Part shown: positions 8,166 through 44,540 of the stretch, in pieces
How positions within the stretch are numbered: position 1 is the first letter of the stretch
Layout: the number at the start of each line of letters is the position of its first letter
DNA from: Tubulanus polymorphus
Lineage: Eukaryota > Animalia > Nemertea
Assembly (NCBI RefSeq): GCF_964204645.1
Contig: NC_134031.1
Location: 21,149,910 to 21,213,909 of the forward strand
Reading direction: 5' to 3'
Length of the DNA stretch: 64,000 nt
Translations under genes and position numbers: made by a program
The notes under the pieces: model-generated
Databases searched by the model: none
Told to the model about the DNA's origin: nothing
Seen by the model: only the letters and a program-made list of their open reading frames with translations

Positions 8166-11100
8166 CACGAAAAATGATTAAATAACGCACACACGACTTA
8201 CAGCAACATTTATCTATATTTATTCCTCATTGTCATGTAACGCACCTGCCTTTTTAAGAATAGTAGTTAGACCATCGAATTGAAACCCTCGCATACCTGG
8301 ATAAGAAAGAATAAATGAATCCCTCGAGTGGACACCAGGGGTCGCAGTTTCACAAAAAACGATGCATTTTTTAACTGAATTTGTTAAGATATTTAATCTG
8401 GATCAAATCTCACAAAAAAGACAAAACAGATGAACTTCATAAGTAAATGAGTAAATGAGTAAATTCATGAGTAAATTATTTCTATGAAACTGAACCCGTG
8501 GGATTTACGTGTGACGTCAACACTAGTTTGTTAGAAATTAATAACTGTACCAACATTAGAGCTTTATATAAGGAGAGTAAATTAATGGTATGATAGAATC
8601 TCCCTAATTCCGATCATTGGGACCAACAAAATTCATCCGTTTTACGGCAAATCCGGATTAAAAGTCATTTTCGTGTATATTAATGATTAAATTGACTGTA
8701 AATATTATCCGGATTAGACCAAAATTCGGATTAAGCCGATGCGGATTAAACAGTTTAGTTTGACTGTATTAGCCAATAGAATCAGTCTTCACCCATCGAA
8801 CTGGCCCCAGGGCACTAAAATTACCAAGAAAAAAACACTGACGAGTGTTGGCCTGTTAAATAAACACAGAAACCCTAGTGTTGGCATGTTACCACACAGA
8901 CTACACGTATTCACAAACTAAGTCAGTCACCACAACTCAGCGGTCTAGTGGTTAGCGTGCTCGGCTGGCATGCTGAAGTACGCAGGTTCGAGTCCTGCTA
9001 GGGTTAGGGTTACGGTCGATCTAGTGCCTCAGGTTGGTGCTAATTTTTGGTCCAGCGAGGTATTTGTAGTACGATGATCATCTGTTTGACTCGGGTTATT
9101 TTTTGGTGAATAGATTCTATACTAACTTATATATTTTGAACACAAATATTTGCTTTATCCTTAGAAGCCACTTTATTTAAAAGATACTTCGCTCAATACA
9201 GTAGTTTATTTCTGAATGAATAAAAGAGTTGGTGACATTATTCAATATATATAAAAACCACAATATCTATTTTACGGTTGGTATGCAACAATTTCCACTC
9301 TTTTCCATATAGGTGTCGCTTTGGATAAATGTCTATATCTCTTGACCCAATGGACCGATTACGATTAAACTTGATACACAGGAACTTTTATCAAATAGCA
9401 CTCGGGGTGGGTGAAATCGCTCTAGGTTGAAGTTACACTGTCCTAAAATGGCTCCAAACAACGTGAAATTGGTAGTTAGGCCTACTACGAGTACGGGTAG
9501 AACACAGTTTGAAATCGTATCGTTGTAGGTTATCGTAAAGAAGATGAATACGACGATTAACAGTACAAATATCGTTATAGACACGGTTTTAGTCGAGACA
9601 TTGATCGCCGGGTTTAAACATTCCTGGATATGACCATGTTTCACAATTAAATTCATCTTCTGAATGAGGACACCATCGAACACGTGTCTAATCGCATCGT
9701 AATGGGTACGGGGTGTCCCGCGTTTGAACCAAGTAATTACTGATACTGGTTCAGAGTGGTATTGATACTGAATAGAGGATGTACAGGGGTATCCCGAGTT
9801 CGAACCCAGTAATTACTGATACTGATTCAGAGAGGTCCTGATGCTGATAAGATGATGTACAGGGGTGTACCGGGTTCGAACTCAGTAGTGGTCCAAGTTG
9901 TCCTGATGCTGAATGGAGGATGTAGGGGTGTCCCGGATTCAAATCCGGTCTATTGGTACTGATTCTGATTGGTCCTGATGCTGAATCGAGGATGTACAGG
10001 GGTGTGTCCCGGGTTCGAGAACCAGTAATTACTGATACTGATTCAGAGTGGTCCTGATGCTGATTAGATGATGTACAGGGGTGTCCCGGGTTCGAACTCA
10101 GTAGTGGTCCAAGTTGTCCTGATGCTGAATGGAGGATGTACGGGGTTGTCCCGACCGTACGGTGCTGCCGCTATGCTCATCGTTAGCGGGATTTCCATAC
10201 ACTAACTGAAGTCAACTCCGTTACACTTGATTGCCAGAGTTGACTAACGTTAGTGTATGAAAATCCCGCTACCGATGAGCATAGAGGCAGCACCGTACGG
10301 TAAAATGTTGATATCTTAACAAAAGTAATTACTGATAACTGATTCTCATTGGTCCTGATGCTGAATGGAGGATGTACAGGGGTGTGTCCCGGGTTCGAGA
10401 ACCAGTAATTACTGATACTGGTTCTGAGTGGTCCTGATGCTAATTAGATGATGTACAGGGGTGTCCCGGGTTCGAAACCAGTAGTGGTCCAAGTTGTCCT
10501 GAGTGTGAATAGAGGATGTACGATGTATCCCGGGTTCAAACCCAGTAATTACTTGTACTGATTCAGAGTGGTACTGATGCTGAATATAGGATGTACAGGG
10601 GTGTCCCGGGCTCGAACCCAGCACTATTACAGAGGTTGTTTCTCAAAAATGATTAAATAACGCACACACGACTTACAGCAACATTTATCTATATTTATTC
10701 CTCATTGTCATGTAACGCACCTGCCTTTTTAAGAATAGTAGTTGGACCATCGAATTGAAACCCCCGCATACTAAGGTAAGAAAGAATAAATGAATTCTTT
10801 CACAAAAAAACGATGTATTTTTTAACTGAATTTGTGAGGAATCTGGATCAAATCTCACAAAAAGATCTTTTTTGTTGATCTTTGATAATTAATCCGTATA
10901 TGTGAAACCGTACCCTCGGTAGGATTTGGTTTATGATGCGAGGGTTTCAATCAGATTTAGATGCTGCAGTTTCGCACTGAATAGCGAGTATTTAATACCA
11001 TCGAGTCCAGTTTCACAGAGAAAGTATCAATCAATTTCAACTTGGATTTACTTTTTTCTTCAAAATAAAATGTTTGAACGCAATTGGTTTGTGAAACTGT

Positions 11101-12365
11101 ACCCTGAGTGAAGTTTTTTGAGTAAACTGAACCCGTGGGATTTACGTGTGACGCACTGAGTGTGTGTGAAACTGCTGGCGTCTGTAATCACAACTAAAAC
11201 AACACAGAAAATTCATCTTTATTTCAAATAAAACAGAACAACAGTTCACACGAAATATTATAGTCCCATAATAAAGAAAACCTGTCGATATTTCAACTTT
11301 ATGGTTTCATTGATTGAGTGACTTGTCAAAACATGTCCATATTACATCATTATACAATATGTGTATCATACAATTTTTTACAAAACCAGACCAATAAAAC
11401 TGGGTCGTTGGGTACAAACAATTACAAACTAATGCAACCAGTTATCGCTGCTTTACAGCTACATTTAATCTTCAATTTCAACTTTCACTAAAACTTTAAC
11501 ACCCACTATATAGAAACTTAATAGAAGTAAAAGAGACAACATTTTGGAGTCTCTGTAGAGACCATCATCAAGTCTGAAGAATAACTAAAACAGGGAAAAA
11601 CAAGTTAATTAGGAAAGTAAAGCGAGTGTTCAGTGCTAAGGTTGAGAGGTTTTGTTATTTTGTTCGTATAGGTTGTTCTAGTTATTTCTTCATTATACTT
11701 TTATTATTTTGATTCTTGATAAATGAATTTTGCCTTTCAAATTTGCATATAACAGGGTTTAAATTATATATTCTATGCCTGAGTCAGGCTATTATTCTAT
11801 TAGCAAAAATGACACCACAGCTTTGAGAGACGAATCAGGGGATGACTCTAATGTTTTTATGTATACGTGATACACAGTCTATCAAACCATCACAAACAGT
11901 AGGCTGCCCGTGCCGGTCGGCACAGATAAACAATATTCATTTGGCTTTAAACTTAAAATTGCAGATCTGAAATAAGTGGCATCATATCAATCTCCAGGTA
12001 GATGGCTGGTCCCTGTCCCTGTCAAATGGCAAATTGGTCCCGATCCCCACTTCGTCCTAGAATAGAGAAAACTTGCGTCAGCAAATATTACATAGAAAAT
12101 GTTCAATTGAATTAACAGTCAAGTGGGAATTGTCTCCATGACATAATTCGGTAACTAGAATCTATAATTACCTTATAATACTAGATAATTCAATACCATT
12201 ATTCAATCTTTGATCACTTTTCAAACTGTTCTATTGGACAAATTTCATGCTGCAAAAAATCATTATACTATGAAAATACTAAGTAATGTATTTATAACAG
12301 TCTGAAATTTGGGCTAAATTCTATTGGAAAATCAATCATTTTCAAACTTGTGTTGAGCAGAATTA

Positions 12366-12405
12366 AGCAGCAGCAGCCGCCGCAGCCGCAGCAGCAGCAG
12401 CAGCC

Positions 12406-12447
<42 letters not shown>

Positions 12448-12463
12448 GCAGCAGTAGCAGCCG
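12366..12463. repeat. Interrupted (CAG)n tract, unit 1
   Basis: CAG repeats with CCG and TAG interruptions. Confidence 0.95.
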
Positions 12464-13534
12464 CACTGCTTTCCTGAGAATCACACATAAAAATTCTGTA
12501 CAGAATAATTAAATGTTAGAATATAATGAAATTAGAGCACAGTGGAGTGATGAAAGACTCACCATTTCTAAACTCATATCAGATTAGTTCAGTGCCATCT
12601 AGCAGGATTTCACTTCCAACAGTAATAATGTCATGAAGTTAAGAGAACTGATGATTTTCTGAGAAAATAAATTCTTAAAACGATAGCAGCAGCTTCAGCA
12701 ACTAGAGCTTCTTTACTCTTTGAAGGTGAATATTTTTAATTTCTCCAGTGCCAAAAAGTGTTGGGCGTATTGCATTCTGGAAAGAGAAAATTATGCCAGA
12801 AAATGGTTAATGAAATAGATAGAAACTGCAACTCTGTTTGTGTTCAATTGACAGAAAACCTACCAGGTTAATGAGTAGTTTATCACAATGTGTCGAGTAT
12901 ATGCAGATTTTTGAGAGGTTTGATGGTAGCTTTAGACTGCATCCTCAAGTAAAACGTTGATACCTGCCAACATTGACCGATCAAAACATCATTTTCTGGA
13001 CTTGATTTGAAGATCACCACAAATTACTGCAATAAATCGATATAAAACTCACCGCTTCTGACTCGTTTGATTTGTAGAGCGCAATGTTTACTGCAAGTTC
13101 AGCTTTATTTTAGACCCTAGAATACAACAGTTGTATAATTTTGATGATTCGAACTTTGACCAGAATAGAAGTGATTGAAATTTCAACTTCACTGATTAAT
13201 GTAGCTTCTAATCAGGAAATGAGTTTATAAATGTACAGTCAAACAGAGACTAGAATCAGTAGAGATATTTACCGGTACCGTATTGGTTTTGAGGATCTAA
13301 AGCGATGTCCATCTTAAACAAATGTGAAGTGAATTCCCAATGTTTACTGTTCACAGATTCTATCAAGGGTTCCAGTTATTTCAGCTCCTAAATACAAATT
13401 TTAGAAATTGTCAGTTAAGTTGTTATGAAATAAGAGCAGTTTCACAAAAAAATCAAACTAAGCCGTGATCTTTGAGTGATTGAATGCTGGAAACATAAAC
13501 AGATAGAATAATTTATATAGAACAGTTCTCTAAA

Positions 13535-14595
13535 AACAAGAAGCCTGTCGGCTTATATAGCTCCGCTGTCTTTGTTGTGGCTTGGAGCATAGACTATCAC
13601 ATCAGTATCTATTTGAAACTAGATGTTCAGGGACATTATAGCCATTTGGAGAAGGGCCACAATACCAATAATCATACTAACATACTCTAAACTGACAAAC
13701 TGTTGGAACTGAAGTCATAAGTGGAACAAACTGTAGTCCCCAAGTATAGGCACCAAGTGAAATTTATCAAAAATCTATGCAATTGCTTCGATATAGAATG
13801 GCTCTATACTTTTGTAGGCACTCCCCAATAGATCATTCATATGAAGTTTGGTTGAAATCTACTGAAAACTGGAGTAGAAGTAGAAATTTAAGTGAAAATC
13901 TAAAAATAGCCCTAATTTGCATAATTTATGCAAAATCAAAAGTATGGCTCTATACTTTTGTAGGCACTCCCCCATAGATCATTCATACCAAGTTTGATTG
14001 AAATCCGCTGAAAATCGATGGAGGAGTAGCGATTTTAGTGAAAATCTAAAAATAGCCCTAATTTGCATAATTTATGCAAAATCAAAAATATGGCTCTGTA
14101 CTTTTGTAGGCACTCCCCCATAGATCATTCATACCAAGTTTGATTGAAATCCGCTGAAAATCGATGGAGGAGTAGCGATTTTAGTGAAAATCTAAAAATA
14201 GCCCTAATTTGCATAATTTATGCAAAATCAAAAATATGGCTCTGTACTTTTGTAGGCACTCTCCCATAGATCATTCATACCAAGTTTGATTGAAATCCGC
14301 TGAAAATCGATGGAGGAGTAGCGATTTTAGTGAAAATCTAAAAATAGCCCTAATATGCATAATTTATGCAAAATCAAAATTATGGCTCTGTACTTTTGTA
14401 GGCACTCCCCCATAGATCATTCATACCAAGTTTCATCAAGATCCCATCAGAACTGTAGGACTAGTAGGGATATAAAGAAAAAGTTGACGCCGGACACCGA
14501 ACGGACGGACGGACGGACGGACGAACGACCGGACGGACGGACGACGAACCCCCTAACCCATCAGCTCCGCTGACCTTCGGTCACAGCGGAGCTAA
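13535..14595 (+). mobile_element. Non-autonomous pearl/HINE (Helentron-associated)-like element, unique to unit 1
   Basis: Absent in sister units (empty site ttctctaaaaataatg at ~27415, 37667, 61238); AA duplicated. Subterminal inverted repeat AGCTCCGCTG (13559) / CAGCGGAGCT (14584), 3' hairpin AGCTCCGCTGACCTTCGGTCACAGCGGAGCT, internal ~146-bp tandem repeats, and a (GGAC)n microsatellite near the 3' end. Confidence 0.85.
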
Positions 14596-14620
14596 TAATG
14601 AATTTCCAAACAGGTTTTAC

Positions 14621-15165
14621 CTGCTACTGCTGCTGTTGCAGCTGGTGGTGGCGCTGTTGCTGCATAGTGCTGGTACTGCGGGTACTGCCAGTGCTGCTGT
14701 TGCAGCTGCTGGTGGCGCTGTTGCTGCATAGTGTTGGTACTGCGGGTACTGCCAGTGCTGCTGTTGCAGCTGGTGGTGGCGCCGTTGCTGCATGGTGCTG
14801 GTACTGCAGGTACTGCCAGTGCTGCTGTTGCAGCTGGTAGTGACGCCGTTGCTGCATGGTGCTGGTACTGCAGGTACTGCCAGTGCTGCTGTTGCAGCTG
14901 CTGGTGGTGCTGTTGCTGCATAGTGCTGGTACTGCGGGTACTGCCAGTGCTGCTGTTGCAGCTGGTGGTGGCGCCGTTGCTGCATGGTGCTGGTACTGCA
15001 GGTACTGCCAGTGCTGCTGTTGCAGCTGGTGGTGGCGCCGTTGCTGCATGGTGCTGGTACTGCAGGTACTGCCAGTGCTGCTGTTGCAGCTGCTGGTGGC
15101 GCTGTTGCTGCATGGTGCTGGTACTGCAGGTACTGCCAGTGCTGCTGTTGCTGCTGCTGCTGCGG
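14621..15165. repeat. 61/64-bp CTG-rich minisatellite, about 8 copies here. Shorter versions at 27450-27736, 37702-37917, 61273-61368.
   Basis: Unit TGCTGCTGTTGCAGCTGCTGGTGGCGCTGTTGCTGCATGGTGCTGGTACTGCAGGTACTGCCAG. Confidence 0.9.
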
Positions 15166-15421
15166 TGTGTATCTCATCCTGTAACTGAGAGTAAAACTGT
15201 AATTTTTAGTTCAAAAATAATTAAAAATATCAACAGAGACTGTGAAGAATTCTGTGGAGAAATTCATTACCAGTTTTATACTTACCTTAAATGAGCCTGT
15301 TTAAATAGTAAATTATATTGCATTCATTTCATTCTGAAAAGAAAAAGAAGCAATAATCAGTGGCAATAGAGCAGAATGTAACATCTCAAATTATCAATCA
15401 ATCAGACAGAAACAGTACAGG

Positions 15422-15619
15422 ATTTCTGTAGATTAAACTGCTGTACTTATTTCATACTGATTGAACAGTTACAGATACATGTAACATTGTGTACAGATAC
15501 AGAGTACAGATCACTGCATTACTTCATCCTGTGATTGAACAGTGATTTAATGTTCTTTCATCTTCATTAGATTCCCATCAGTCTAACTAAAACATCAGAA
15601 CATTTTAACTCATCTAACC
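15422..15619. repeat. Left arm of a ~198-bp inverted repeat (partner 19283-19479)
   Basis: atttctgtagattaaactgctgtac...ctcatctaacc is the reverse complement of ggttaggtgagt...gtttaatctgcagaaat. Same pair at 27996-28193/31227-31429 and 38175-38372/42006-42203; left arm only at 61628-61825. Confidence 0.95.
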
Positions 15620-16050
15620 TCCCGACCCGACCCTCCCAGACCCCATCCCTCCCACTCTCCCACACCCCTTCCCTCCCGCCCTCCCCGACCCCATCCCTCC
15701 CACCCTCCCGGACCCCTTCCCTCCCGCCCTCCCAAACCCCTTCCCTCCCGCCCTCCCCTTCCCTTCCCTTCCACCGTCCGATACCCCTTCCCTCCAGCGC
15801 CCCTTCCCTCCCTCCCTTCCTCCCTCCCTCAATGCCCTCCCACCTGGCCCTCCCTCAATGCCCTCCCACCTGGCCCACCCTCAATGCCCTCCCACCTAGC
15901 CCTCCCTCAATGCCCTCCCACCTGGCCCACCCTCAATGCCCTCCCCCCTGGCCCACCCTCAATGCCCTCCCACCTGGCCCACCCTCAATGCCCTCCCACC
16001 TAGCCCTCCCTCAATGCCCTCCCACCTAGCCCTCCCTCAATGCCTCCTCA
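15620..16050 (-). repeat. C-rich low-complexity tract (GGGA-rich, G-quadruplex-prone on the minus strand)
   Basis: (CCCT/CCCA)n and ~25-bp CCCTCAATGCCCTCCCACCTGGC units. A second tract lies at ~19010-19281; both occur in each complete unit. Confidence 0.9.
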
Positions 16051-16909
16051 ACTCTCTTGTCTCCTCTTCACACACCACTCATCTGTACAATAACTACAAA
16101 ACGATTTGCCATTTTTCACGATCATATCAATTTCATATATAAATCAAAATCCTTAATCAATTGCATCATTGATGGGACTCACAGATACTTTCTCTACACA
16201 TTTTGGAGGCATTCAGATGACCTCAAATGATCATATGCCTGGGTTGGTCTTGAAAATCACATGGCTTCAATTTTACAGATGATTTCTTTATCAATTTCAT
16301 CAAATTATTCCTATTATTTCTACTCCCTCTAATAAGTATTCACAATATATCTCAGTTTCATGACAAGTTGCAGCAGTCGTCTGTAAATAGATTTCATTTC
16401 ATCAAATGATGCGAGTTTGAGTTGTAGAGGTTTCATCTACAAAACATCAAACTAAACCTGAGGAACTTAATGTTGTAAGGTAGGGGGACGTATATGGAGG
16501 GTTCACCCGAACCGAGGAATAAGCCCGAACCAAATCTCCACACTCACAAAATGTCGTGAGAAGGGCAAACACAAACCAAGGACAAGAATGATGGCTGAGA
16601 TCAAAACAATTAATGCTATTTATGTTGCTTCACCAATTCAACATGACGTCACTAAATGAAACCATTGTGGACTATTTCAATACTCTCTACTAGAGGTTTC
16701 ATATAAGCAAGTAGTTTATGGAATCCTATTCATAAAAGTCATAAGTCAATGTTTTTAAACTGCTGATGCAAAATATATACGTCAGAAATAATCTGTTTGA
16801 TTGTCTTTTCAAGTTAACACTTAAACCCAGTGGAACAAATCAAACTCCAGCCATTTTTCCTTCATTTGCCATTTTTCGTTTTTACTCTTTTCTCTGACTT
16901 TTAGCACTT

Positions 16910-16990
16910 GAGTCGAGGTAGGAATAGACCCCTGCCCGCTCGCTAAGCGTGCAGGACACTAAACCTTCGAATTGCTCTCGGACCCCACTC
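16910..16990 (-). ncRNA. 81-nt structured RNA-like element with a Y-RNA-like bulged-C terminal helix. Copies at 29295-29375, 39440-39520, and three in tandem at 62883-63163.
   Basis: Minus strand GAGUGGGGUCCGAG...UCCUGCACGCUUAGCGAGCGGGCAGGG...CUACCUCGACUC: GGGU-C-CGAG pairs with CUCG-ACUC. Several G-U pairs form only on this strand. Confidence 0.35.
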
Positions 16991-17150
16991 TTTATATCAG
17001 CAATTCATGCTGTTTTATTTTATTCACGCATTCGCTTTACATTTTTTCATATGGCTTTTCCTTATTTGTCGTCTCACTAAAATTCTCATCAGTTCCGACT
17101 TGGATCAAGTTTAATCTTTTAGAGACAAACAGCAAAAGGTTGTGTTAGTT

Positions 17151-17182
<32 letters not shown>

Positions 17183-17309
17183 TGCAGCAGCAACACTGAT
17201 ACAGATGAATCTTTCATTAACTACGTCATTTGTTCCATTCTCAAATATTGAGTCATGAAGGCAACAGAAATAACTTTAAAAAACGTTAAATCTTTCATTC
17301 ATGGTCTTT

Positions 17310-17520
17310 GTTTAGTGACCTAAGCGTCAAAGTTTGGTTCATAGCCCAGGTTTGGTGACCAAAGAGTCAAAGTTTGGTTCATGGCTCAGGTTTAGTGACC
17401 AAAGAGTCAAAGTTTGATTCATAGCTCAGGTTTAGTGACCAAAGAGTCAAAGTTTGGTTCATAGCCCTGTTTTGGTGACCAAAGAGTCAAAGTTTGGTCT
17501 ATGATTCTGATTTGGTGACC
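17310..17520. repeat. 40-bp minisatellite (TTTGGTGACCAAAGAGTCAAAGTTTGGTTCATAGCCCAGG). Also at 29695-29786, 39830-40201, 63480-63650.
   Basis: Tandem repeats with variable copy number between units. Confidence 0.9.
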
Positions 17521-18181
17521 ACGGAGGGTAAATATAGCTCATGGCCCTCGTTAAAGGTAAGTCAGTTTTATGGCTCTGGTTTGATTAGCAAATAATATGA
17601 GAAATTGTGCGTTGCATATGTTGAATAGGGGAATTGGACTAAACACTCATCACTAGAATAAAGTGAAGAATTATGTTTACACTGAATGGGCTCAAAATCT
17701 TGTACTAATTGATAAAGTCCGAAATAATTCTGACTAATTGAGTCTACCGGAAAATGATGCATTGATCGAAGTCTAAAAGCTATAAACTGACAAATTGATC
17801 GAGCACTGATAATATTTTAAATAACAGCGGAGGATGAAATAACTTTCATAAAACTGATATGATCGTGAAAAATGGCAAAATACACTAGATACACCTCCCC
17901 CACGCTTTATCAGAGTCTCATTGTAGTAGGAAGATTGCCGTAGCCTAACTGTAAAAACTACAACTACATCTGGTTGAATATCATTTGTTTTTATGGCTTT
18001 TAAATTCAGTAAAATATTTCCTGATAGAAGTATAATTAGTTCGCAGCCCCTTAAATTCTGTCTAGAATAGAATTATAAGTCACAGGTAGAAATAGAATAT
18101 TATCCTATTCTAAAATGAATATAATAATAGAACAATAGTCTCTCCGTGTCAATCTTTGTCCCACCTAAAAATTGAACAGTT

Positions 18182-18950
18182 TATTTCAGAAGATGTGTCC
18201 CATCTTTTTGAAAAGGATAACTAATTATTAAGGATATCTATGAATAGTGATATACTGTGCCATGAAGGCAAATGTAGAAGTGTGTCTGAAAATCCATAAA
18301 AGTGATAACAAAACATATCACTTATTCTAATGAGTTCTATACTCTTCTTCCAAAAATGAAGAGTAGGTCTCTGTCTAAGAATCTGCAGAAAAAAGAGGAA
18401 GCAGCGATGAATGTGACTGCATCTCGACTCTCGTCAATAATTTTCTAAGTCGTCCTATACAGTTCTCAGTATTTACAGCCGTTTTTAAAATAGCACAGAA
18501 GAAAATACATTTTTCAGCTGGAAATGTATCAGTAAACCGCCAGATATCAACAGTAATTATTACGTATGATTATTGTTTCATTCAATTATTAATGAAACCG
18601 TGTTTTGATCGGAGCCAAGGAGCAGTTTGTGATCATTCAAAAAATATCTCTCATTCCTGACCACATTAAATAATGGCCCTAAAATTTGAAACGTCCCAAT
18701 TCAAAAATCTGGGGGCAATTATCTCATAACGATTGAGAGAAGTGATGGTGAAATTACGTGCGCACTCACCGGGGATCAAACCCGGGTCTCATAGAAATAA
18801 CAACTAGTAAAATAGAACGAGTCCAATTGGCCGATGCTTATACAGCTTGTCATGCATAACAACTGAAACATGACATGTTGCAGTCACGTGTTTCATAATG
18901 ATTAATCCTTTCTTAGAATAATAAAAAGATGGGACACATTTTCTGAAATA
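18182..18950. mobile_element. Possible MITE with ~28-bp TIRs, present in each complete unit
   Basis: TATTTCAGAA(G/A)ATGTGTCCCATCTTTTT ... AAAAAGATGGGACACATTTTCTGAAATA. Confidence 0.55.
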
Positions 18951-20367
18951 TCCTAAACTTCAAGACTAAAACTACGACTAAACCACCTGTACTTGTACCT
19001 AAACCCTAAAGCCCCACCATATATCCCTCCCTCCAAAGTCCTACCACCACCCCTACATCCCTCCCATCCTCCCGGACCCCATCCCTCCCACCCTCCCGGA
19101 CCCCTTCCCTCCCCCTCCCGGACCCCTTCCCTACCGCCCTCCCTCCCAAACCCCTTCCCTCCTGCCCTCCCTCACCCCATCCCTCCCACCCAGACCCCTT
19201 CCCTCCCACCGTCCCCCACCCCAACCCTCCCTCCCTCTACCCCTTCCCTCCCCCAACCCTACCCACCCTCCCCAAACCCCGTGGTTAGGTGAGTAGAATG
19301 TTCTGATGTTTTAGTTAGACGGATGGGAATCTAATGAAGATGAAAGAACATTAAATCACTGTTCAATCACAGGATGAAGTAATGCAGTGATCTGTACTCT
19401 GTATCTGTACACAATGTTACATGTATCTGTAACTGAACAATCAGTATGAAATAAGTACAGCAGTTTAATCTGCAGAAATTCTAACTCTTAAGATACACAT
19501 GATCTGATTATCACGAAGAAACATGATTGATAACAGTTGTATTATTGACATCAGGAACCAGTTTCATATTGATTAGAAATAACATTTTAGTTGATCACAA
19601 TTTAGAAAACCTGTAAACCCGCTTACAGAAATAACAATCCCAACCATGAACTGATTATAGCCAAATATTCACCAAAAGAAATTTGAAATGATTGAATAAC
19701 TGTGACAGGTTTCTGAGATTTCATTTCAAAACATGGTTTATAACAAACAATATAAAATTGGTCCCTTAAAATCAATTCAACAACCGATAAATAAAGATTA
19801 ATGTTACTTATCTTGAATTTCCACATAGGCTATAGTGATTCCTGATGTCATGCTGAATCCAAGAGTGATTCCCGATGTTCTGTGCTAAATCAAAAAAAGT
19901 CTGGTAGTAAAACACTGATTCCTTGTTGTCCTGTGCTGAATCCAAGAATGATTCCCGATGTCCGGCGCAAAACCAAAAAAGTCTGATTGTGAAACACTGA
20001 TTCCTTGTTGTCCTGTGCTGAATCTAAGAGTGATTCTTGTTTTCCTGTGCTGAATCAAAATTCCCGTTGAACATGTTGAAGTGATACCTATAATAGACAA
20101 ATCTAAGATTGTTTTCTTTCCTTAGAAATAACTGCAGAAATATCAAATCTAAAATTCAAACTTACAAATTAGATTGTTCGCTCCAATCTGCAGTTCATTT
20201 ATTCAAGGGGTTTTTCTATCCACAGTTTAGGTTTTGCATCTAGAGTTCAACATGAAATAAACAAGAAAGTAATGAAAAAACGAACAGTTTAAATATTATC
20301 TGTTTCTGAAACCAATGAAGATCATCATCATCAATATCACAGACGAATGGAGGCAAGTAGAGGCATC

Positions 20368-24824: not shown

Positions 24825-33070
<8,246 letters not shown>

Positions 33071-35551
33071 CGTCATAGTGTACCTCAGATTGGGATTCCC
33101 GCCGGTAGACTGGTCACCGCCACCTGTATTCGCAGGTAGAAATGGCAACCAGTCTATTGCAGGTCTCGGCATCTTTTCGATTAGATTAGGTTTTATATTC
33201 TACGCAATATTCAAAGAATTTATTCTAATGAAAACCACGCTCTTTACCAATCTAATCATTCGTTTCGAGGTTTCCGTAATTACTACTTTAGTTCACAGAA
33301 ATTCCGCTATCGTTATTCATAGGGGCAGCACTGAACGGTTGTAATTTGATGCAGTCTTGCTATTTTACTGCGGCATGTGAGGAATACAGATTTTTCTTAA
33401 GTCAAATTTCATTCATCACTCAACACTAGTTTGTTAGAAATTAATAACTGTACCAACATTAGAGCTTTATATAAGGAGAGTAAATTAATGGTATGATAGA
33501 ATCTCCCTAATTCCGATCATTGGGACCAACAAAATTCATCCGTTTTACGGCAAATCCGGATTTAAAAGTCATTTTCGTGTATATTAATGATTAAATTGAC
33601 TGTATATATTATCCGGATTAGACCAAAATTCGGTCGATGCGGATTAAACGATTTAGTTTGACTGTATTAGCCAATAGAATCAGTCTTCGCCCATCGAACT
33701 GGCCCCAGGGCACAAAAATTACCAAGAAACAAACACTGACGAGTGTTGGCCTGTTTAATAAACGCAGAAACCCTAGTGTTGGCCTGTTTAATAAACGTAG
33801 AAACCCTAGTGTTGGCCTGTTTAATAAACGTAGAAACCCTAGTGTTGGCCTGTTTAATAAACGCAGTAACCCTAGTGTTGGCCTGATTAATGAACTCAGT
33901 AACCCTAGTGTTGGCCTGTTTAATAAACGTAGAAACCCTAGTGTTGGCCTGTTTAATAAACGTAGAAACCCTAGTGTTGGCCTGTTTAATAAACGCCGAA
34001 ACCCTAGTGTTGGCCTTGTACCACACTGACCAACCATATTCACAAACCAGGTCAGCCATCAGAACTCAGCGGTCTAGTGGTTAGCGTGCTCGGCTGGCAT
34101 GCTGGAGGGCGCAGGTTCGAGTCCTGCTAGGTTTATCGATCTAGGGTTAGGGTTAGTGCCTCAGGTTGGGGCTAATTTTTGGCCCAGCGAGGTATTTGTA
34201 GTACGATGATCATCTGTTTGACTCGGGTTATTTTTTGGTCAATAGATTCTATACTAACTTATATATTTTGAACACAAATATTTGCTTTATCTAGTGGAGG
34301 CCACTTTATTTAAAAGATACTTCGCTCAATACAGTAGTTTATTTCTAAATGAATAAAAGAGTTGGTGACATTATTCAATATATATAAAAACCACAATATC
34401 TATTTTAAGGTTGGTATGCAACAATTTCCACTCTTTTCCATAGGTGTCGCTTTAGATAAATATCTATATCTCTTGGCCCAATGGACCGATTACGATTAAA
34501 CTTGATACACAGGAACTTTTATCAAGTAGCACTCGGGGTGGGTGAAATCGCTCTAGGTTGAAGTTACACTGTCCTAAAATGGCTCCAAACAACGTGAAAT
34601 TGGTAGTTAGGCCTACTACGAGTACGGGTAGAACAACACAGTTTGAAATCGTATCGTTGTAGGTTATCGTAAAGAAGATGAATACGACGATTAACAGTAC
34701 AAATATCGATATAGACACGGTTTTAGTCGAGACATTGATCGCCGGGTTTAAACATTCCTGGATATGACCATGTTTCACAATTAAATTCATCTTCTGAATG
34801 AGGACGACCATCGAACACGTGTCTAATCGCGTCATAATGGGTACGGGGTGTCCCGCGTTCGAACCAAGTAATTACTGATACTGGTTCAGAGTGGTCTTTG
34901 TACAGGGGTGTCCAGGGTTCGAACTGAGTAGTGGTCCAAGTTGTCCTGATGCTGAATGGAGGATGTACAGGGTTGTGTCCCGGGTTCGAGAACCAGTAAT
35001 TACTGATACTGACTCAGAGTGGTCCAGATGCTGATTAGATGATGTACAGGGGTGTCCCGGGTTCGAACTCAGTAGTGGTCCAAGTTGTCCTGATGCTGAA
35101 TGGAGGATGTACACGGGTGTCCCGACCGTACGGTGCTGCCGCTATGCTCATCGTTAGCAGGATTTCCATACACTAACTGAAGTCAACTCTGGCAATCGTC
35201 GTGCTGTCCAGCTATACTCCGTAACCCTTGCTTGCCAGAGTTGACTAACGTTAGTGTATGAAAATCCCGCTACAGATGAGCATAGAGGCAGCACCGTACG
35301 GTGAAATGTTGATATCTTAACAAAAGTAATTACTGATTCTGATTGGTCCTGATGTTGAATGGAGGATGTACAGGGGTATCCCGGGTTCGAACCAGTAATT
35401 ACTGATACTGGTTCAGAGTGGTCTTGATACTGAATAGAGGATGTACAGGTGTCCTGGGTTCGACCCCGCCACGAAAAATGATTAAATAACGCACACACGA
35501 CTTACAGCAACAATTATCTATATTTATTCCTCATTGTCATGTAACACACCC

Positions 35552-35769
35552 GGACGCAGTTCCACAGTTGTGTTAGAGTTAACTCCGAGTTAAAGTTAAT
35601 TCATTTTCAATAAGTTACCCCAGGGCCCAGTTTCACAAAAAGGTTTAACTCTTAAATCGGTTTAATTTCTTCATTAATTCACTTTATCTTAAATCGATTT
35701 AGGCCTTAATCCTTTTTGTGAAACTGGGCCCAGAATTAAATCTTAACTCAACAACTGTGGAACTGGACC
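35552..35769. mobile_element. Harbinger-like MITE with a second MITE nested at 35624-35730, unique to unit 3
   Basis: Outer TIRs CAGTTCCACAGTTG / CAACTGTGGAACTG at the empty site gcacCTGcctttt. Inner TIRs GGCCCAGTTTCACAAAAAGG / CCTTTTTGTGAAACTGGGCC flanked by CAG/CAG. Confidence 0.85.
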
Positions 35770-36176
35770 CTGCCCTTTTAAGAATAGTAGTTGGACCATC
35801 GAATTGAAACCCTCGCATACCAGAGTAAGAAAGAAAAAATGAATTCCTCGAGTGGACACCAGGGGTCGCAGTTCCACAAAAAACGATGCATTTTTTAACT
35901 GAATTTGTGAAGAAATTTAATCTGGATCAAATCTCACAAAAAGATCTTTTTTGTTGATCTTTGATAACTAATCTGTATATGTGAAACCGTACCCTCGGTA
36001 GGATTTGGTTTATGATGCGAGGGTTTCAATCAGATTTAGATGCTGCAGTTTCGCACACTGAATAGCGAGTGTCCAGTTTCACAGAGAAAGGATGAATCAA
36101 TTTCAACTTGGGATTTACTTTTTCGTTCAAAATAAAATGTTTGAACGCAATTGGTTCGTGAAACTGTACCCTAGGC

Positions 36177-39100
36177 TGCCCGTGCCGGTCGGCACAGATA
36201 AACAATATTCATTTGGCTCCAGGTAGATGGTTGGTCGCTGTCCCTGTCAAATGGCAAATTGGTCCCGATCCCCACTTTGTCCTAGAATAGAGAAAATATT
36301 ACATAGAAAATGTTCGATTGAATTAACAGTCAAGTGGGAATTGTTTTCATGACATAATTCGGTAACTAGAATTTATAATCACCTTATAATTCTAGATAAT
36401 TCAACACCATTATTCAATCTTCGATCACTTTTCAAACTGTTCTATTGGACAAATTTCATGCTGCAAAAAATCATTATACTATGAAAATACTAAGTAATGT
36501 ATTTATAGCAGTCTGAAATTGGGGCTAAATTCTATTAGAAAATCAATCATTTTCAAACTTGTGTTGAGCAGAATTAAGCAGCAGCAGCTGCAGCAGCATC
36601 AGCCGCACTGCTTCCCGGAGAATCACACATAAAAATTCTGTACAGAATAATTAAATGTTAGAATATTATGAAATTAGAGCACAGTGCAGTGATGAAATAC
36701 TCACCATTTCTAAACTCATATCAGATAAGTTCAGTGCCATCTAGCAGGATTTCACTTCCAACAGTAATAATGTCATGAAGTTAAGAGAACTGATGATTTT
36801 CTGAGAAAATAAATTCTTAAAACGATAGCAGCAGCTTCAGCAACTAGAGCTTCTTTACTCTTTGAAGGTGAATATTTTTAATTTCTCCAGTTCCAAAAAG
36901 TGTTGGGCGTATTGCATTCTGGAAAGAGAAAATTATGCCAGAAAATGGTTAATGAAATAGATAGAAACTGCAACTTGTTTGTGTTCAATTGACAGAAAAC
37001 CTACCGGGTTAATGAGTAGTTTATCACAATGTGTCGAGTATATGCAGATTTCTGAGAGGTTTGATGGTAGCTTTAGACTGCGTCCTCAAGTAAAACGTTG
37101 ATACCTGCCAACATTGACCGATCAAAACATCATTTTCTGGACTTGATTTGAAGATCACCACAAATTACTGCAATAAATCGATATAAAACTCACCGCTTCT
37201 GACTCGTTTGATTTGTAGAGCGCAATGTTTACTGCAAGTTCAGCTTTATTTGAAACCCTAGAATACAACAGTTGTATAATTTTGATGATTCGAACTTTGA
37301 CCAGAATAGAAGTGATTGAAAATTCGCCTTCACTGATTAATGTAGCTTCTAATCAGGAAATGAGTTTATAAATGTACAGTCAAACAGAGACTAGAATCTG
37401 TAGAGATATTTACCTGTACCGTATTGGTTTTGAGGATCTAAAGCGATGTCCATCTTAAACAAATGTGAAGTGAATTCCCAATGATTACTGTTCACAGATT
37501 CTATCAAGGGTTCCAGTTATTTCAGCTCCTAAATACAAATTTTAGAAATTGTCAGTTAAGTTGTTATGAAATAAGAGCAGTTTCACAAAAAAATCAAACT
37601 AAGCCGTGATCTTTGAGTGATTGAATGCTGGAAACATAAACAGATAGAATAATTTATATAGAACAGTTCTCTAAAAATAATGAATTTCCAAACAGGTTTT
37701 ACCTGCTGCTGCTGCAGCTGGTGGTGGCGCTGTGGCTGCATAGTGCTGGTACTGCAGGTACTGCCAGTGCTGCTGCTGCAGCTGCTGGTGGCGCTGTGGC
37801 TGCATGGTGCTGGTACTGCGGGTACTGCCAGTGCTGCTGTTGCAGCTGCTGGTGGCGCTGTTGCTGCATGGTGCTGGTACCGCGGTTACTGCCAGTGCTG
37901 CTGTTGCTGCTGCTGCGGTGTGTATCTCATCCTGTAACTGAGAGTAAAACAGTAATTTTTAGTTCAAAAATAATTCAAAATATCAACAGAGACTGTGAAG
38001 CATTCTGTGGAGAAATTCATTACCAGTTTTATACTTACCTTAAATGAGCCTGTTTAAATTGTAAATTATATTGCATTCATTTCATCCTGAAAAGAAAAAG
38101 AAACAATAATCAGTGGCAATAGCGCAGAATGTAACATCTCAAATTATCAATCAATCAGACAGAAACAGTACAGGATTTCTGTAGATTAAACTGCTGTACT
38201 TATTTCATACTGATTGTACAGTTACAGATACATGTAACATTGTGTACAGATACAGAGTACAGATCACTGCATTACTTCATCCTGTGATTGAACAGTGATT
38301 TAATGTTCTTTCATCTTCATTAGATTCCCATCCATCTAACTAAAACATCAGAACATTTTAACTCATCTAACCTCCCGACCCGACCCTCCCAGACCCCTTC
38401 CCTCCCGCCCTCCCAAACCCCTTCCCTCCCGCCCTCCCTGACCCCTTCCCTCCCGCCCTCCTGGACCCCTCCCTCAATGCCCTCCCACCTGGCCCTCCCT
38501 CAATGCCCTCCCACCTGGCCTACCCTCAATGCCCTCCCACGTAGCCTTCCCTCAATGCCCTCCCATCATGCCTCCTCAACTCTGTTGTCTCCTCTTCACA
38601 CACCACTCATCTGTACAATAACTACAAAACGATTTGCCATTTTTCACGATCATATCAATTTCATTTATAAATCAAAATCCTTAATCAATTGCATCATTGA
38701 TGGGACTCACAGATACTTTCTCTACACATTTTGGAGGCATTCAGATGACCTCAAATGATCATATGCCTGGGTTGGTCTTGAAAATCACATGGCTTCATTT
38801 TTACAGATGATTTCTTTATCAATTTCATCAAATTATTCCTATTATTTCTACTCCCTCTAATAAGTATTCACAATATATCTCAGTTTCACGACAAGTTGCA
38901 GCAGTCGTCTGTAAACAGATTTCATTTCATCAAATGATGCGAGTTTTAGTTGTAGAGGTTTCATCTACAAAACATCAAACTAAACCCGAGGAACTTAATG
39001 TTGTAAGGTAGGGGGACGTATATGGAGGGTTCACCCGAACCAAGGAAATAAACCCGAACCAAACCTCCACACTCACAAAATGTCGTGAGAAAGGCAAACA

Positions 39101-42100
39101 CAAACCAAGGACAAGAATGATGGCTGAGATCAAAACAATTAATGCTATTGATGTTGCTTCACCAATTCAACATGACGTCACTAAATGAAACCATTGTGGA
39201 CTATTTCAATACTCTCTACTAGAGGTTTCATATAAGCAAGTAGTTTATGGAATCCTATTCATAAAAGTTATAAGTCAATGTTTTTAAACTGCTGATGCAA
39301 AATATATACGTCATTAAATAATCTGTTCGATTGTCTTTTCAAGTTAACACTTAAACCCAGTGGAACAAATCAAACTCCAGCCATTTTTCCTTTATTTGCC
39401 ATTTTTCGTTTTTACTCTTTTCTCTGACTTTTAGCACTTGAGTCGAGGTAGGAATAGACCCCTGCCCGCTCGCTAAGCGTGCAGGACACTAAACCTTCGA
39501 ATTGCTCTCGGACCCCACTCTTTATATCAGCATTTCATGCTGTTTTATTTTATTCACGCATTCGCTTTACATTTTTTCATATGGCTTTTCCTTATTTGTC
39601 GTCTCACTAAAATTCTCATCAGTTCCGACTGGGATCAAGTTTAATCTTTTAGAGACAAAGAGCAAAAGATTGTGTTAGTTGCAGCAGCAGCAGCTGCAGC
39701 AGCACCAGCAGCAACACTGATACAGATGAATCTTTCATTAACTACGTCATTTGTTCCATTCTCAAATATTGAGTCATGAGGGCAACAGAAATAACTTTAA
39801 AAAACGCTAAATCTTTCATTTATGGCCTTGGTTTGGTGACCTAAGCGTCGAAGTTTGGTTCATAGCCCAGGTTTGGTGACCAAAGAGTCAAAGTTTGGTT
39901 CATGGCTCGGGTTTAGTGACCAAAGAGTCAAAGTTTGGTTCATAGCTCTGTTTTGGTGACCAAAGAGTCAAAGTTTGGTTCATAGCTCTGTTTTGGTGAC
40001 CAAAGAGTCAAAGTTTGGTTTATAGCTCTGTTTTGGTGACCAAAGAGTCAAATTTTGGTTCATAGCCCTGTTTTGGTGACCAAAGAGTCAAAGTTTGGTT
40101 CATGGCTCAGGTTTAGTGACCAAAGAGTCAAAGTTTGGTTCATAGCCCTGTTTTGGTGACTAAAGAGTCAAAGTTTGGTCTATGGTTCTGATTTGGTGAC
40201 CTCGGAGGGTAAATATAGCTCATGGCCCTCGTTAAAGGTAAGTCAGTTTTATGGCTTTGGTTTGATTAGCAAATAACATGAGAAATTGAGCGTTGCATAT
40301 GTTGAATAGGGGAATTGGACTAAACACTCATCACTAGAATAAAGTAAAGAATTATGTTTACACTGAATGGGCTCAAAATCTTGTACTAATTGATAAAGTC
40401 TGAAATAATTCTGGCTAATTTGAGTCTATCGGAAAATGATGCATTGATCGAAGTCTAAAAGCCATAAACTGACAAATTGATCGAGCACTGATAATATTTT
40501 AAATAACAGCGGAGGATGAAATAACTTTCATAAACTGATATGATCGTGAAAAATGGCAAAATACACTAGATACACCTCTCCCCCGCTTTATCAGAGTCTC
40601 ATTGTAGTAGGAAGATTGCCGTAGCCTAACTATAAAAACTACAACTACATCTGGTTGAATATCATTTGTTTTTATGGCTTTTAAATTCAGTAAAATATTT
40701 CCTGATAGAAGTATAATTAGTTCGCAGCCCCTTAAATTCTGTCTAGAATAGAATTATAAGTCACAGGTAGAAATAGAATATTATCCTATTCTAAAATGAA
40801 TATAATAATAGAACAATAGTCTCTCCTTGTCAATCTTTGTCCCACCTAAAAATTGTACAGTTTATTTCAGAAATTGTGTCCCATCTTTTTGAAAAGGATA
40901 AGTAATTATTAAGGATATCTATGAATAGTGATATACTGTGCCATGAAGGCAAATGAAGAAGTGTGTCTGAAAATCCATAAAAGTGATAACAAAACATATC
41001 ACTTATTCTAATAAGTTCTATACTCTTCTTCCAAAAATGAAGAGTAGGTCTCTGTCTAAGAATCTGCAGAAAAAAGAGGAAGCAGCAATGAATGTGAACT
41101 GCATCTCGACTCTCGTCAATAATTTTCTAAGTCGTCCTATACAGTTCTCAGTATTTACAGCCGTTTTTAAAATAGCACAGAAGAAAATACATCTTTCAGC
41201 TGGAAATGTATCAGTAAACCGCCAGATATCAACAGTAATTATTACGTATGATTGTTGTTTCATTCAATTATTAATGAAACCGTTTTTTGATCGGAGCCAA
41301 GGAGCAGTTTGTGATCATTCAAAAAATATCTCTCATTCCTGACCACATTAAATAATGGCCCTAAAATTTGAAACGTCCCAATTCAAAAATCTGGGGGCAA
41401 TTATCTCATAACGATTGAGAGAAGTGACGGTGAAATTACGTGCGCACTCACCGGGGATCAAACCCGGGTCTCATAGAAATAACAACTAGTAAAATAGAAC
41501 GAGTCCGATTGGCCGATGGTTATACAGCTTGTCATGCATAACAACTGAAACATGACATGTTGCAGTCACGTGTTTCATAATGATTAATCCTTTCTTAGAA
41601 TAATAAAAAGATGGGACACATTTTCTGAAATATCCTGAACTTCAAGACTAAAACTACGACTAAACCACCTGTACTTGTACCTAAACCCTAAAGCCCCACC
41701 ATATATCCCTCCCTCCAAAGTCCTACCACCACCCCTACATCCCTCCCACCCTCCCAAGTCCTACCACCACCCCTACATCCCTCCCACCCTCCGGGACCCC
41801 ATCCCTCCCGGACCCCTTCCCTCCTGCCCTCTCGGACCCCTTCCCTCCCGCCCTCCCTCCCACACCCCTTCCCTCCCGCCCTCCCTCACCCCATCTCTCC
41901 CACCCTTCCTCCCAGACCCCTTCCCTCCCACCGTCCCCCACCCCAACCCTCCCTCCCTCTACCCCTTCCCTCCCCCCAACCCTACCCACCCTCCCTAAAT
42001 CCCGTGGTTAGGTGAGTTGAATGTTCTGATGTTTTAGTTAGATGGATGGGAATCTAATGAAGATGAAAGAACATTAAATCACTGTTCAATCACAGGATGA

Positions 42101-43830
42101 AGTAATGCAGTGATCTGTATCTCAGTATCGGTACACAATGTTACATGTATCTGTAACTGTACAATCAGTATGAAATAAGTACAGCAGTTTAATCTATAGA
42201 AATTCTAACTCTTAAGATACACATGATCTGATTATCAAGAAGGAACATGATTGATAACAGTTGTATTATTGACATCAGGAACCAGTTTCATATTGATTAG
42301 AAATAACATTTGAGTTGATCACAATTTAGAAAACCTGTAAACCCGCTTACAGAAATAACAATCCCAACCATGAACTGATTATAGCCAAATATTCACCAAA
42401 AGAAATTTGAAATGATTGAATAAATGCAACAGGTTTCTGAGATTTCATTTCAAAACATGGTTTATAACAAACAATATAAAATTAGTCCCTTAAAATCAAT
42501 TCAACCACCGATAAATAAATGTAACTTATCTTGAATTTCCACATAGGCTATAGTGATTCCTGATGTCATGCTGAATCCAAGAGTGATTCCCGATGTCCTG
42601 TGCTAAATCAAAAAAAGTCTGGTAGTAAAACACTGATTCCTTGTTGTCCTGTGCTGAATCCAAGAATGATTCCCGATGTCCGGCGCAAAACCAAAAAAGT
42701 CTGATTGTGAAACACTGATTCCTTGTTGTCCTGTGCTGAATCTGAGAGTGATTCTTGTTTTCCTGTGCTGAATCAAAATTCCCGTTGAACATGTTGAAGT
42801 GATACCTATAATAGACAAATCTAAGATTGTTTTCTTTCCTTAGAAATAACTGCAGAAATATCAAATCTAAAATCTAAAACTTACAAATTAGATTGTTCAC
42901 TCAAATCTGCAGTTCGTTTATTCACGGGGTTTTTCTATCCACAGTTTAGGTTTTGCATCTAGAGTTGAACATGAAATATAAACAAAAAGGTAATGAAAAA
43001 ATGAACAGTTTAAATATTATCTGTTTCTGAAACCGATGATGATCATCCTCATCAATATCACAGACGAATGGAGGCAAGTAGAGGCATCAATCCTCCTGCG
43101 GCAGGGACTCGATCCAGAATGCCACGGTACGAAACCCTGCCACACTAGACCTAGTGCGCAGCAGCTACACGCGCAGCTTAGATGATGTCATTAATAGCCA
43201 ATCAGAAATTCAGTTTTATTTGAGCCCAGGTTTTGCCATTTATAGTTCTTCCGTGAAATTTACCTCAGCGATTAACGAGCAATCTGTTTGGTGCCGCAAG
43301 ATTTCGCGCGGTAAAGCTGCGCATGTACCTGCGCACCCGGTCTAGTGTGGCAGGGGTTCGTGCCGTGGCTGAGTGTAGCAAGCGATGTCATCAGGTTCAA
43401 ATCCCTCCCATGGGAGGATGTTGGTGTCCCACATGTTTGACTGCGATTAATAGGCCTATAGGTTAAGCGACAGATGAAATAAACTTACACTGTTTGATTA
43501 AATCAGTCGATGGAATCATTTTAGAACAAATTCATTACAACACAGCGAGATGAAGCCCATCGTGATCTAGAAATATCAGGATGGAATGACGTCATGCTTG
43601 ACTGAGCGCCACCGACCATGTGCACCGTTTGTTTGTAGGATGTGACTCTGAAATAATATGATTTCCCACAATATCTGAGATGGAATATTTTTCGCCATTT
43701 AAACCAATGTTACAAACACTTACCAAATATTGAAATACTGATTTCAGGGGTCGGGAAGGAGGGTGGCAATGTTTAGGTGAGGTTTTTGCTTAATTTCGTG
43801 TTATGGTAAAGCACGCCATTTTGATATTGC
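36177..43830 (-). ncRNA. Candidate spliced lncRNA gene, unit 3 copy, lacking the terminal exon
   Basis: Promoter and internal splice sites conserved; last exon and polyA region deleted at 36172. Confidence 0.45.
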
Positions 43831-44540
43831 GTCATAGTGTACCTCAGATTGGGATTCCCGCCGGTAGACTGGTCACCGCCACCTGCATTCGCAAGTAGAA
43901 ATGGCAACCAGTCGATTGCAGGTCTCGGCTTCTTTTCGATTAGATTAGGTTTTGAATTCTACGCAATATTCAAAGAATTTATTCTAATGAAAACCACGCT
44001 CTTTACCAATCTAATCATTCGTTTCGAGGTTTCCGTAATTACTACTTTAGTTCACAGAAATTCCGCTATCGTTATTCATAGGGGCAGCACTGAACGGTTG
44101 TAATTTGATGCAGTCTTGCTATTTTACTGCGGCATGTGAGGAATACAGATTTTTCTTAAGTCAAATTTCATTCATCACTCAACACTAGTTTGTTAGAAAT
44201 TAATAACTGTACCAACATTAGAGCTTTATATAAGGAGAGTAAATTAATGGTATGATAGAATCTCCCTAATTCCGATCATTGGGACCAACAAAATTCATCC
44301 GTTTTACGGCAAATCCGGATTTAAAAGTCATTTTCGTGTATATTAATGATTAAAATGACTGTAAATATTATCCGGATTAGACCAAAATTCGGATTAAGCC
44401 GATGCGGATTAAACGATTTAGTTTGAATGTATTAGCCAATAGAATCAGTCTTCACCCATCGAACTGGCCCCAGGGCACTAAAATTACCAAGAAACAAACA
44501 CTGACGAGTGTTGGCCTGTTTAATGAACGCAGAAACCCTA

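Follow-up and report, generated by a model that had tools for sequence, protein, structure and literature searches.

A long composite macrosatellite near chromosome ends of the nemertean Tubulanus polymorphus, and the gene-like pattern of its unit

When a run of promoter-like, splice-like and polyadenylation-like signals recurs several times in tandem, is it an amplified gene or the make-up of a repeat? The question is raised by a 64,000-nt stretch of the Tubulanus polymorphus genome (here the window: NC_134031.1, or contig C7, positions 21149910-21213909, in a 268-Mb assembly), in which long units follow one another head to tail. An earlier note, written from the letters of this window, had read the minus strand of each unit as a complete multi-exon non-coding gene: a promoter, a series of short exons with consensus donors and acceptors, and a terminal AATAAA. 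Comparison of the units with each other and with their relatives in the rest of the assembly suggests instead that they are probably a subtelomeric macrosatellite, derived from a promoter-bearing, non-coding interspersed repeat of ~7.5 kb and spread between chromosome ends by recombination. Positions without a contig name are those of the window.

The array and its unit

Self-comparison and tiling of the window reveal a head-to-tail tandem array, far above chance expectation, with 90-98% identity between matching segments of three complete units (U1, U2, and U3). Head-to-tail units of 1 kb or more make a macrosatellite, and the earlier description of one with ~11-13-kb units is borne out: the three full units measure 10.8-13.0 kb and occupy 8584-44241. 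Two 42-mers, invariant in 23 aligned copies, are used below as landmarks and as probes for a genome census. The 5' 42-mer (20997-21038) lies at the first proposed splice donor, and the 3' 42-mer (13008-13049) is the first 42 nt of a conserved 3' module. The G+C content of stretches of the window ranges from 36 to 49%, and a search for Alu-like sequence in it gave no match. Its layout is as follows:

4567-8583: degenerate, partly duplicated pieces of spacer between the end of a TRAF gene and U1, with 85-94% matches to 8844-10795
8584-21533, minus strand, 12,950 bp: U1, made up of spacer (8584-12646), core (12647-21240), and 290 bp from the beginning of the inter-unit sequence, as defined by self-comparison and tiling
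21534-33482, minus strand, 11,949 bp: U2, 90-97% identical to U1 when tiled on it; 5' 42-mer at 32945-32986, 3' 42-mer at 26896-26937
33487-44241, minus strand, 10,755 bp: U3, 78-98% identical to U1 by segment and 92-98% across the core; 5' 42-mer at 43709-43750, 3' 42-mer at 37149-37190
44246-55778, 11.5 kb: interruption of the array, opening with the initial 300 bp of a unit, which an 18-bp minisatellite and ~10 kb of other non-coding DNA follow
55779-64000, minus strand: next unit, truncated by the end of the window, with spacer and the 3' half of the core; 3' 42-mer at 60720-60761

The limits originally given for the array, 8517-44178, do enclose it in part but are too narrow: spacer pieces precede them (4567-8583), and further units begin at 55779 and continue to at least C7:21258474, 44 kb past the end of the window. 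The 5' module of the unit at 55779 falls ~3.3 kb outside the window, the next 5' 42-mer being at C7:21217204. In the interruption, the 18-bp minisatellite is present in 49 copies (44541-45425), with a related minisatellite at 46276-46516, and the final ~1.2 kb is similar to 3315-4335 and 6737-7479; its open reading frames (ORFs) have no Pfam match, and neither 42-mer occurs in it.

U1 can be divided into the following parts, listed in the direction of the minus strand, with the spacer last:

12647-21240, minus strand, read from 21240 to 12647: core, a stretch of ~7.5-8.5 kb held in common with older copies elsewhere in the genome
20936-21165, minus strand: conserved 5' module, spanning the proposed promoter, exon 1, and intron 1, with equivalents at ~32884-33113 and ~43648-43877
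20322-20758: inverted pair of tRNA-like short interspersed nuclear element (SINE) pieces within proposed intron 2, an insertion peculiar to the subtelomeric subfamily
15626-16044: tract of 24-26-bp repeats, rich in C (in G when read on the minus strand), with a second tract at ~18957-19310; GC skew -0.15 to -0.26
14621-15156: GC-rich 64-bp minisatellite, 8.4 copies; 4.4 copies in U2 (27450-27732) and 3.3 in U3 (37704-37915)
13550-14600: 1.05-kb insertion found in U1 only (one of 23 aligned copies), holding a 146-bp minisatellite of 4.4 copies (13798-14433)
12970-13049, minus strand: invariant 80-nt 3' module, beginning directly after the GTGAGT at 13052 and containing AATTTGTGG
8584-12646: spacer, peculiar to the subtelomeric lineage, with SINE pieces at 9706-10621 and (GCT)n at 12366-12515

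Differences in unit length are due to minisatellites and insertions. As had been noted from the window, minisatellite copy numbers vary between units: a 33-bp repeat upstream of each core (for example 21797-22434) has 6-19 copies, the 64-bp repeat 3-8, and the spacer (AGC)n ~50 or 118. The last of these is a very unstable repeat of the CAG/CTG type; it is a pure (AGC)118 in U2 (26022-26376), compared with ~50 repeats at the equivalent U1 site (12366-12515). The inverted SINE pair is likewise a local addition: identity to 20322-20758 is ~0.02 in all 23 dispersed paralogs compared (see below), which have only ~120 nt at that place. Tandem repeats of 76-79 bp at 9706-10621, 23267-24147, and 7607-7839 each end in the tRNA T-arm-like sequence GGGTTCGAACCC; they are SINE-derived pieces converted into a minisatellite, and ARAGORN called no tRNA gene.

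Copies near chromosome ends and in chromosome interiors

The unit is not confined to this locus. A 1.2-kb probe taken from it finds copies at 94-97% identity, spaced ~11 kb apart, on C1, C3, C4, C6, C7, C10, and C54. Allowing up to three mismatches, the 5' 42-mer has at least 68 matches in the genome (at least 50 of them perfect) and the 3' 42-mer at least 67 (at least 57 perfect); the two modules are 6.0-8.0 kb apart in arrays and dispersed copies alike. With the 5' module of an old copy as probe, there are at least 103 candidate loci. In all, the family numbers ~100 copies, of which 55-60 are young (2-3.5% apart) and at least 30 are older. The young copies, in which the unit is 95-97% identical, form head-to-tail arrays of 3-12 units, each unit 10-13.5 kb long, at distances of 12-510 kb from at least six chromosome ends, taken here as the ends of chromosome-sized contigs:

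C7 left array: 12-47 kb from the contig end
C4 left array: 436-509 kb
C4 right array: 81-205 kb
C1 right array: 192-251 kb
C10 right array: 128-356 kb
C7 right array, the one in the window: 365-452 kb

Of seven array blocks, six have the sense strand of the unit directed away from the nearest end. The telomere repeat of this genome is TTAGGG, and (TTAGGG)n blocks are present at ends of C1, C4, and C7. Location near ends, occurrence on non-homologous ends, common polarity, and exchange between ends, by which a subtelomeric family is recognized, are all found.

The case for exchange comes from a tree of 23 array copies (U1-U3 and 20 others from the genome) over 5,250 well-aligned columns. Copies do not group by chromosome end but are intermixed, divergence averages 2.5% within arrays compared with 2.9% between them, and the nearest relative of each of the three window units sits on another chromosome; two C7-left units are identical. 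Since neighboring units resemble one another no more than they resemble units of other chromosomes, it may be inferred that arrays of already diverged units were copied between ends as multi-unit blocks, through ectopic recombination. Array length would then change by unequal exchange, and local duplications would be later than the block copying.

Two further observations concern these chromosome ends. Interstitial (TTAGGG)n tracts lie tens of kb inside them, on C4 at 25.8, 47.7, and 64.5 kb and on C7 at 21.564 and 21.5715 Mb. One arm of C10 carries arrays at 13.94-14.02 Mb and 14.09-14.18 Mb in opposite orientation, which is either a palindromic subtelomere or an assembly problem.

Older relatives were located through variant forms of the 5' 42-mer, which led to 24 dispersed copies on C1, C2, C3, C4, C6, C7, C9, and C11; 3 kb were read around each. 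Their aligned segments are 74-93% identical to U1. Older copies occur singly or in small tandems, in the interior of at least nine chromosomes. In a tandem pair on C3 (locus L025), the sequence aligns with 13457-12647 and then passes straight into the promoter-like region of the next copy, with no spacer between the cores; the ancestral unit was therefore the ~7.5-kb core. The subtelomeric lineage gained the ~4.5-kb spacer, in which tRNA-like SINE pieces, (GCT)n, and the 33-bp minisatellite are combined. There is also a dispersed subfamily on C1, C3, C4, C6, C7, C8, and C9, 82-96% identical to a 5'-module probe from its C1 group; such a spread over seven chromosomes is behavior typical of mobile DNA. 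These older copies may have dispersed by a route that was probably mobile-element-like.

At 26.218-26.222 Mb on C3, four occurrences of the 3' module, spaced 1.1-1.5 kb apart, have a 5' module among them, forming mini-units that retain only the two conserved ends. A ~155-nt interspersed repeat (for example L034:970-1130, at 21.778 Mb on C1) has at least 40 copies in the genome, several of them just upstream of old family copies.

The genome-wide distribution also bears on the gene next to the window's array. This is a TRAF2-like gene whose last exon (221-1144, plus strand) encodes a coiled coil and a MATH domain (Pfam E = 3e-44); its best protein match is 62% identical, and the best named relative, from Lineus longissimus, 59%. 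The earlier note had set its proposed RNA family beside an immune adaptor gene. The unit is in fact genome-wide and mainly subtelomeric, and four weaker TRAF-type MATH exons elsewhere in the genome include none beside other arrays, so the neighborhood of array and TRAF gene is accidental.

Splice signals, coding potential, and conserved modules

The individual signals on which the gene model was built are all present in the sequence. GT or AG stands at every one of the twelve proposed junction bases; E2F-like, CCAAT, cAMP response element (CRE)-like, and YY1-like strings are found at 21165-21105; and AATAAA at 13109-13104 is followed by a GT-rich stretch. There is also a strand bias: GTRAGT occurs eight times on the minus strand, compared with 2.9 +/- 1.7 in shuffled sequences, and 0-2 times on the plus strand. 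At P of about 0.01 before allowing for choices, this would be a signal modestly above chance. Conservation of splice signals among units had been offered as further support, and it is true that they are conserved, but it is uninformative, because the units differ by only 2-3% throughout.

Wider comparisons give the splice sites no special standing. Across the 24 splice positions in 23 array copies, 4.2% of cells depart from the consensus, compared with 3.2% in 5,789 background columns (P = 0.78), and 16 of the 24 are invariant, compared with 71% of background columns. In 23 older paralogs, ten splice bases are alignable; their identity is 0.80, compared with 0.73 for background (P = 0.21). The donor at 20165 and acceptor at 20088 are retained in 21-23 of these 23; at the acceptor at 20240, the A is kept in only 22%, with GG in most. 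By segment, identity in the paralogs is 0.52 for exon 2, 0.78 for exon 3, 0.84 for intron 1, and 0.86 for intron 3. In an older copy on C3, the single one read in the 3' part, AATAAA has become AATGGA and the GTGAGT at 13052 has become GTTAGT. The proposed intron 14621>13387 is long in U1 only, because of the 1.05-kb insertion that only U1 carries. With splice bases at background level, the 20240 acceptor mostly lost, and introns kept as well as exons, the exon-intron structure as proposed finds no support in a comparison of about 50 copies and, as judged by that comparison, is not maintained by selection. Nor was a transcription-type strand asymmetry seen among 485 polarized substitutions (A>G 58, T>C 48; P = 0.2), a test of low power.

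That the unit lacks a long spliced ORF, as the earlier note had also stated, agrees with the coding-potential checks, by which it is non-coding. None of 74 stop-to-stop ORF pieces of at least 45 amino acids, from both strands of U1, contains a Pfam domain (joined spliced sequence was not part of this search); among the long ORFs of the window and 75 pieces from the flanks and the interruption, the only real Pfam hit is the TRAF MATH domain. Every proposed exon, checked singly, has stop codons in all three frames, except the one in the 64-bp minisatellite, where the lack of stops in any frame is due to repetitive composition alone; with a period not divisible by three and a variable copy number, this repeat has no stable reading frame. 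Nearly all ORFs of at least 60 amino acids are broken in most of the 23 copies. Two plus-strand ORFs, at 16030-16227 (66 amino acids) and 16963-17145 (61 amino acids), are open in 22 and 21 of the 23 copies, respectively, without a family match; the unit varies least where they lie, and probably low divergence alone keeps them open. Rfam searches of the whole window at the gathering threshold, and of U1 at E <= 1, returned only CAG-repeat noise, with nothing to suggest small RNAs.

What does stand out is a pair of short modules, one toward each end of the core. In the 5' module, a GC-rich E2F-like box is followed by CAATATCAAAATGGCG, then after ~95 nt by GGTAAGT, a second AAATGGCG, and a TTTCAG end. 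The block from 21124 to 20936 (~190 nt), together with the GC-rich box directly upstream, is the best-kept part of the family: identity across 21118-20939 is 0.75-0.92 in 23 dispersed paralogs, compared with 0.44-0.64 directly downstream, and the 23 array copies have one variable site per 60. The YY1-like and E2F-like boxes are retained in most paralogs. The 3' module has no variable sites at all in the 23 array copies, while the adjoining 60 nt are hypervariable. Neither conserved stretch is predicted to fold better than shuffled sequence (z = -0.35 and -0.38). Because both modules contain GT followed by an Sm-like string, an RNA of the spliced-leader or Sm class was considered; it was rejected for want of an Rfam match or a fold, and also because the sequence just upstream of the GT of the 3' module is hypervariable and no compensatory change is found.

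CpG observed/expected ratios are 0.85-1.0 over 21600-20400, compared with 0.2-0.6 in much of the body of the unit. This pattern and the 5' block would fit a promoter followed by a body that is transcribed and perhaps methylated, and no less well the functional end of a mobile element. The conserved block itself is a putative promoter. Transcription from it is possible and a reasonable supposition; it may drive transcription toward the centromere.

Origin of the family and comparison with known systems

How should these arrays be explained? If each unit were an entire gene, transcribed by RNA polymerase II into a long non-coding RNA (lncRNA) that is spliced and polyadenylated, and if this gene had been amplified in tandem and worked by way of its RNA, which might host small or circular RNAs, one would expect what is in fact seen at the 5' end: a promoter-like block conserved in paralogs otherwise just 74-93% identical, and CpG undepleted over the first ~1.2 kb and depleted in much of the body. 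The one-sided excess of strong donors, the retention of the 20165/20088 pair in old paralogs, and the absence of coding potential agree with it too. Against it, splice dinucleotides are kept no better than background in arrays or paralogs; most paralogs have lost the 20240 acceptor, to GG or in another way; among the aligned segments, conservation is lowest in exon 2 and highest in introns 1 and 3; the AATAAA is gone from the C3 paralog; the substitutions carry no mark of transcription; and there is neither an Rfam match nor a significant fold in the conserved blocks. The supposed introns are, moreover, retained in all genomic copies seen (no junction probe for intron-less retrocopies was run). 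A gene of this kind seems unlikely; as a gene model it is unproven, and its details appear unsupported by the sequence comparisons. It is more doubtful still that the 5' block is a working promoter from which ~60 subtelomeric units, and many interior ones, would make a long, G-rich, possibly spliced non-coding RNA running away from the telomere. The gene-like layout, with splice-like signals on one strand, might also be left by a decayed multi-exon protein-coding gene. Such a pseudogene family is very improbable given the lack of any Pfam match in the 74 ORF pieces, the stops in all frames of every proposed exon apart from the minisatellite one, "exon" indels that are not multiples of three, and ORFs broken at random among copies.

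The core could alternatively be a non-autonomous mobile element, rolling-circle or of another class, with the conserved modules as its mobilization ends and both arrays and dispersed copies as products of transposition. Points in its favor are the dispersed copies (30 or more, from nine or more chromosomes, with subfamilies), the short modules flanking a fast-changing interior, the abutting C3 cores, and the C3 mini-units, in which 5' and 3' modules are only ~0.45 kb apart; Helitron derivatives, furthermore, build subtelomeric tandem expansions in cnidarians (PMC11934779). It is opposed by the absence from the unit of any transposase, Rep/helicase, or reverse-transcriptase remnant detectable by Pfam, and of terminal repeats, whether direct or inverted (comparison of the 5' 840 nt of the core with its 3' 1200 nt, on both strands, gives no match above 15 nt). 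At the one core-core junction read, on C3, TC...CTRR termini and a hairpin were not seen; dispersed copies do not share a single 5' limit but have nested ones; and recombination between ends accounts at least as well for the polarity and the intermixed tree. The core as a mobile element is a candidate explanation, if an unlikely one. Two specific assignments were rejected: a long terminal repeat retrotransposon derivative (LARD/TRIM) or terminal inverted repeat transposon, for lack of long terminal direct or inverted repeats, and a Helitron or Helitron derivative, for lack of a Pfam Rep/helicase and of Helitron-type ends at the C3 junction. As for an assembly artifact, with over-expanded or misplaced repeats, the two opposed C10 arrays and the presence of some copies on small unplaced contigs (C54, C56) might raise the suspicion. 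It is hardly credible in view of the 2-3.5% differences between units, their private insertions and minisatellite lengths, and the unique genes, such as TRAF, that flank arrays.

A subtelomeric macrosatellite that grew from an interspersed repeat is the explanation to be preferred, with several points weighing against it. No hallmark of a mobile element that would account for the dispersal was found (coding remnant, terminal repeats, or Helitron ends at the one tandem junction), and the sharp 5' boundary seen in four dispersed copies proved to belong to the unrelated ~155-nt interspersed repeat. The second C10 array is inverted. Proximity to ends covers the arrays of C1, C4, C7, and C10 and leaves aside the copies on C3, C5, and C6; and the copy counts, based on two 42-mers, are lower bounds skewed toward well-conserved copies.

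On this explanation, a major subtelomeric building block can be defined: units of 10-13.5 kb at six or more ends, with polarity, exchange, an interior ancestor, and a short promoter-like module. The case also illustrates that a gene-like pattern read from one window can belong to a repeat family, for which comparison of ~100 copies shows no trace of selection on splice signals. If the module is active, the family would offer an accessible model for macrosatellite-borne non-coding RNA outside vertebrates; and if the non-coding RNA reading were true, a spiralian would have a large lncRNA family spanning its chromosome ends and involved in subtelomere chromatin or in the pairing of those ends.

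Several known systems share parts of this description. Yeast Y' elements and human subtelomeric blocks are duplicons of several kb, found on many non-homologous ends in fixed polarity and exchanged between ends; Y' elements encode a helicase and form at most a few tandem copies. The family described here resembles them in its many ends, in its fixed polarity relative to the telomere, and in a similarity between ends close to that within them, but unlike Y' it is non-coding, forms arrays of 3-12 units, and has interior paralogs. SVA elements are composite, non-autonomous, non-coding retroelements of 2-3 kb, dispersed and transcribed by polymerase II, with an AATAAA, a poly(A) tail, and target-site duplications. 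The unit is similar in being non-coding, in combining variable number tandem repeats with SINE-derived parts and C/G-rich simple repeats, and in its AATAAA; it differs in its length and its arrays, and SVA-like retroposition does not fit C3 cores that abut head to tail. Telomeric repeat-containing RNA (TERRA) is transcribed from a start in the subtelomere onward into the telomere. A transcript of the unit, should there be one, would resemble TERRA and other subtelomeric transcripts in being non-coding and of subtelomeric origin, and would have G-rich tracts in its sense strand, but the units are directed away from the telomere and lie 12-510 kb from the end.

The closest parallels are in tandem arrays. 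The human macrosatellites D4Z4 (4q35/10q26) and DXZ4 consist of tandem ~3-kb units; D4Z4 is subtelomeric, on two chromosome ends, and its unit bears a gene-like element with its own promoter and encodes DUX4, while DXZ4 is not obviously coding yet is expressed (PMC5687341, PMC6451109, PMC3081327, PMC3218863). The tandem arrangement of kilobase-sized units is common to all; the units here are 10-13.5 kb long, full of minisatellites and non-coding, occur at six or more ends and as older dispersed copies, and have no sequence relationship to either. In cnidarians, a Helitron-derived subtelomeric tandem expansion with a 372-bp unit, detectable Helitron affinity, and associated minisatellites is found on many chromosomes (PMC11934779). 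Local amplification at many subtelomeres and the association with minisatellites are shared features, but no Helitron feature was found here and the unit is ~30 times longer. The Tubulanus family is best regarded as a further case of the known subtelomeric macrosatellite kind, with an unusually long and composite unit.

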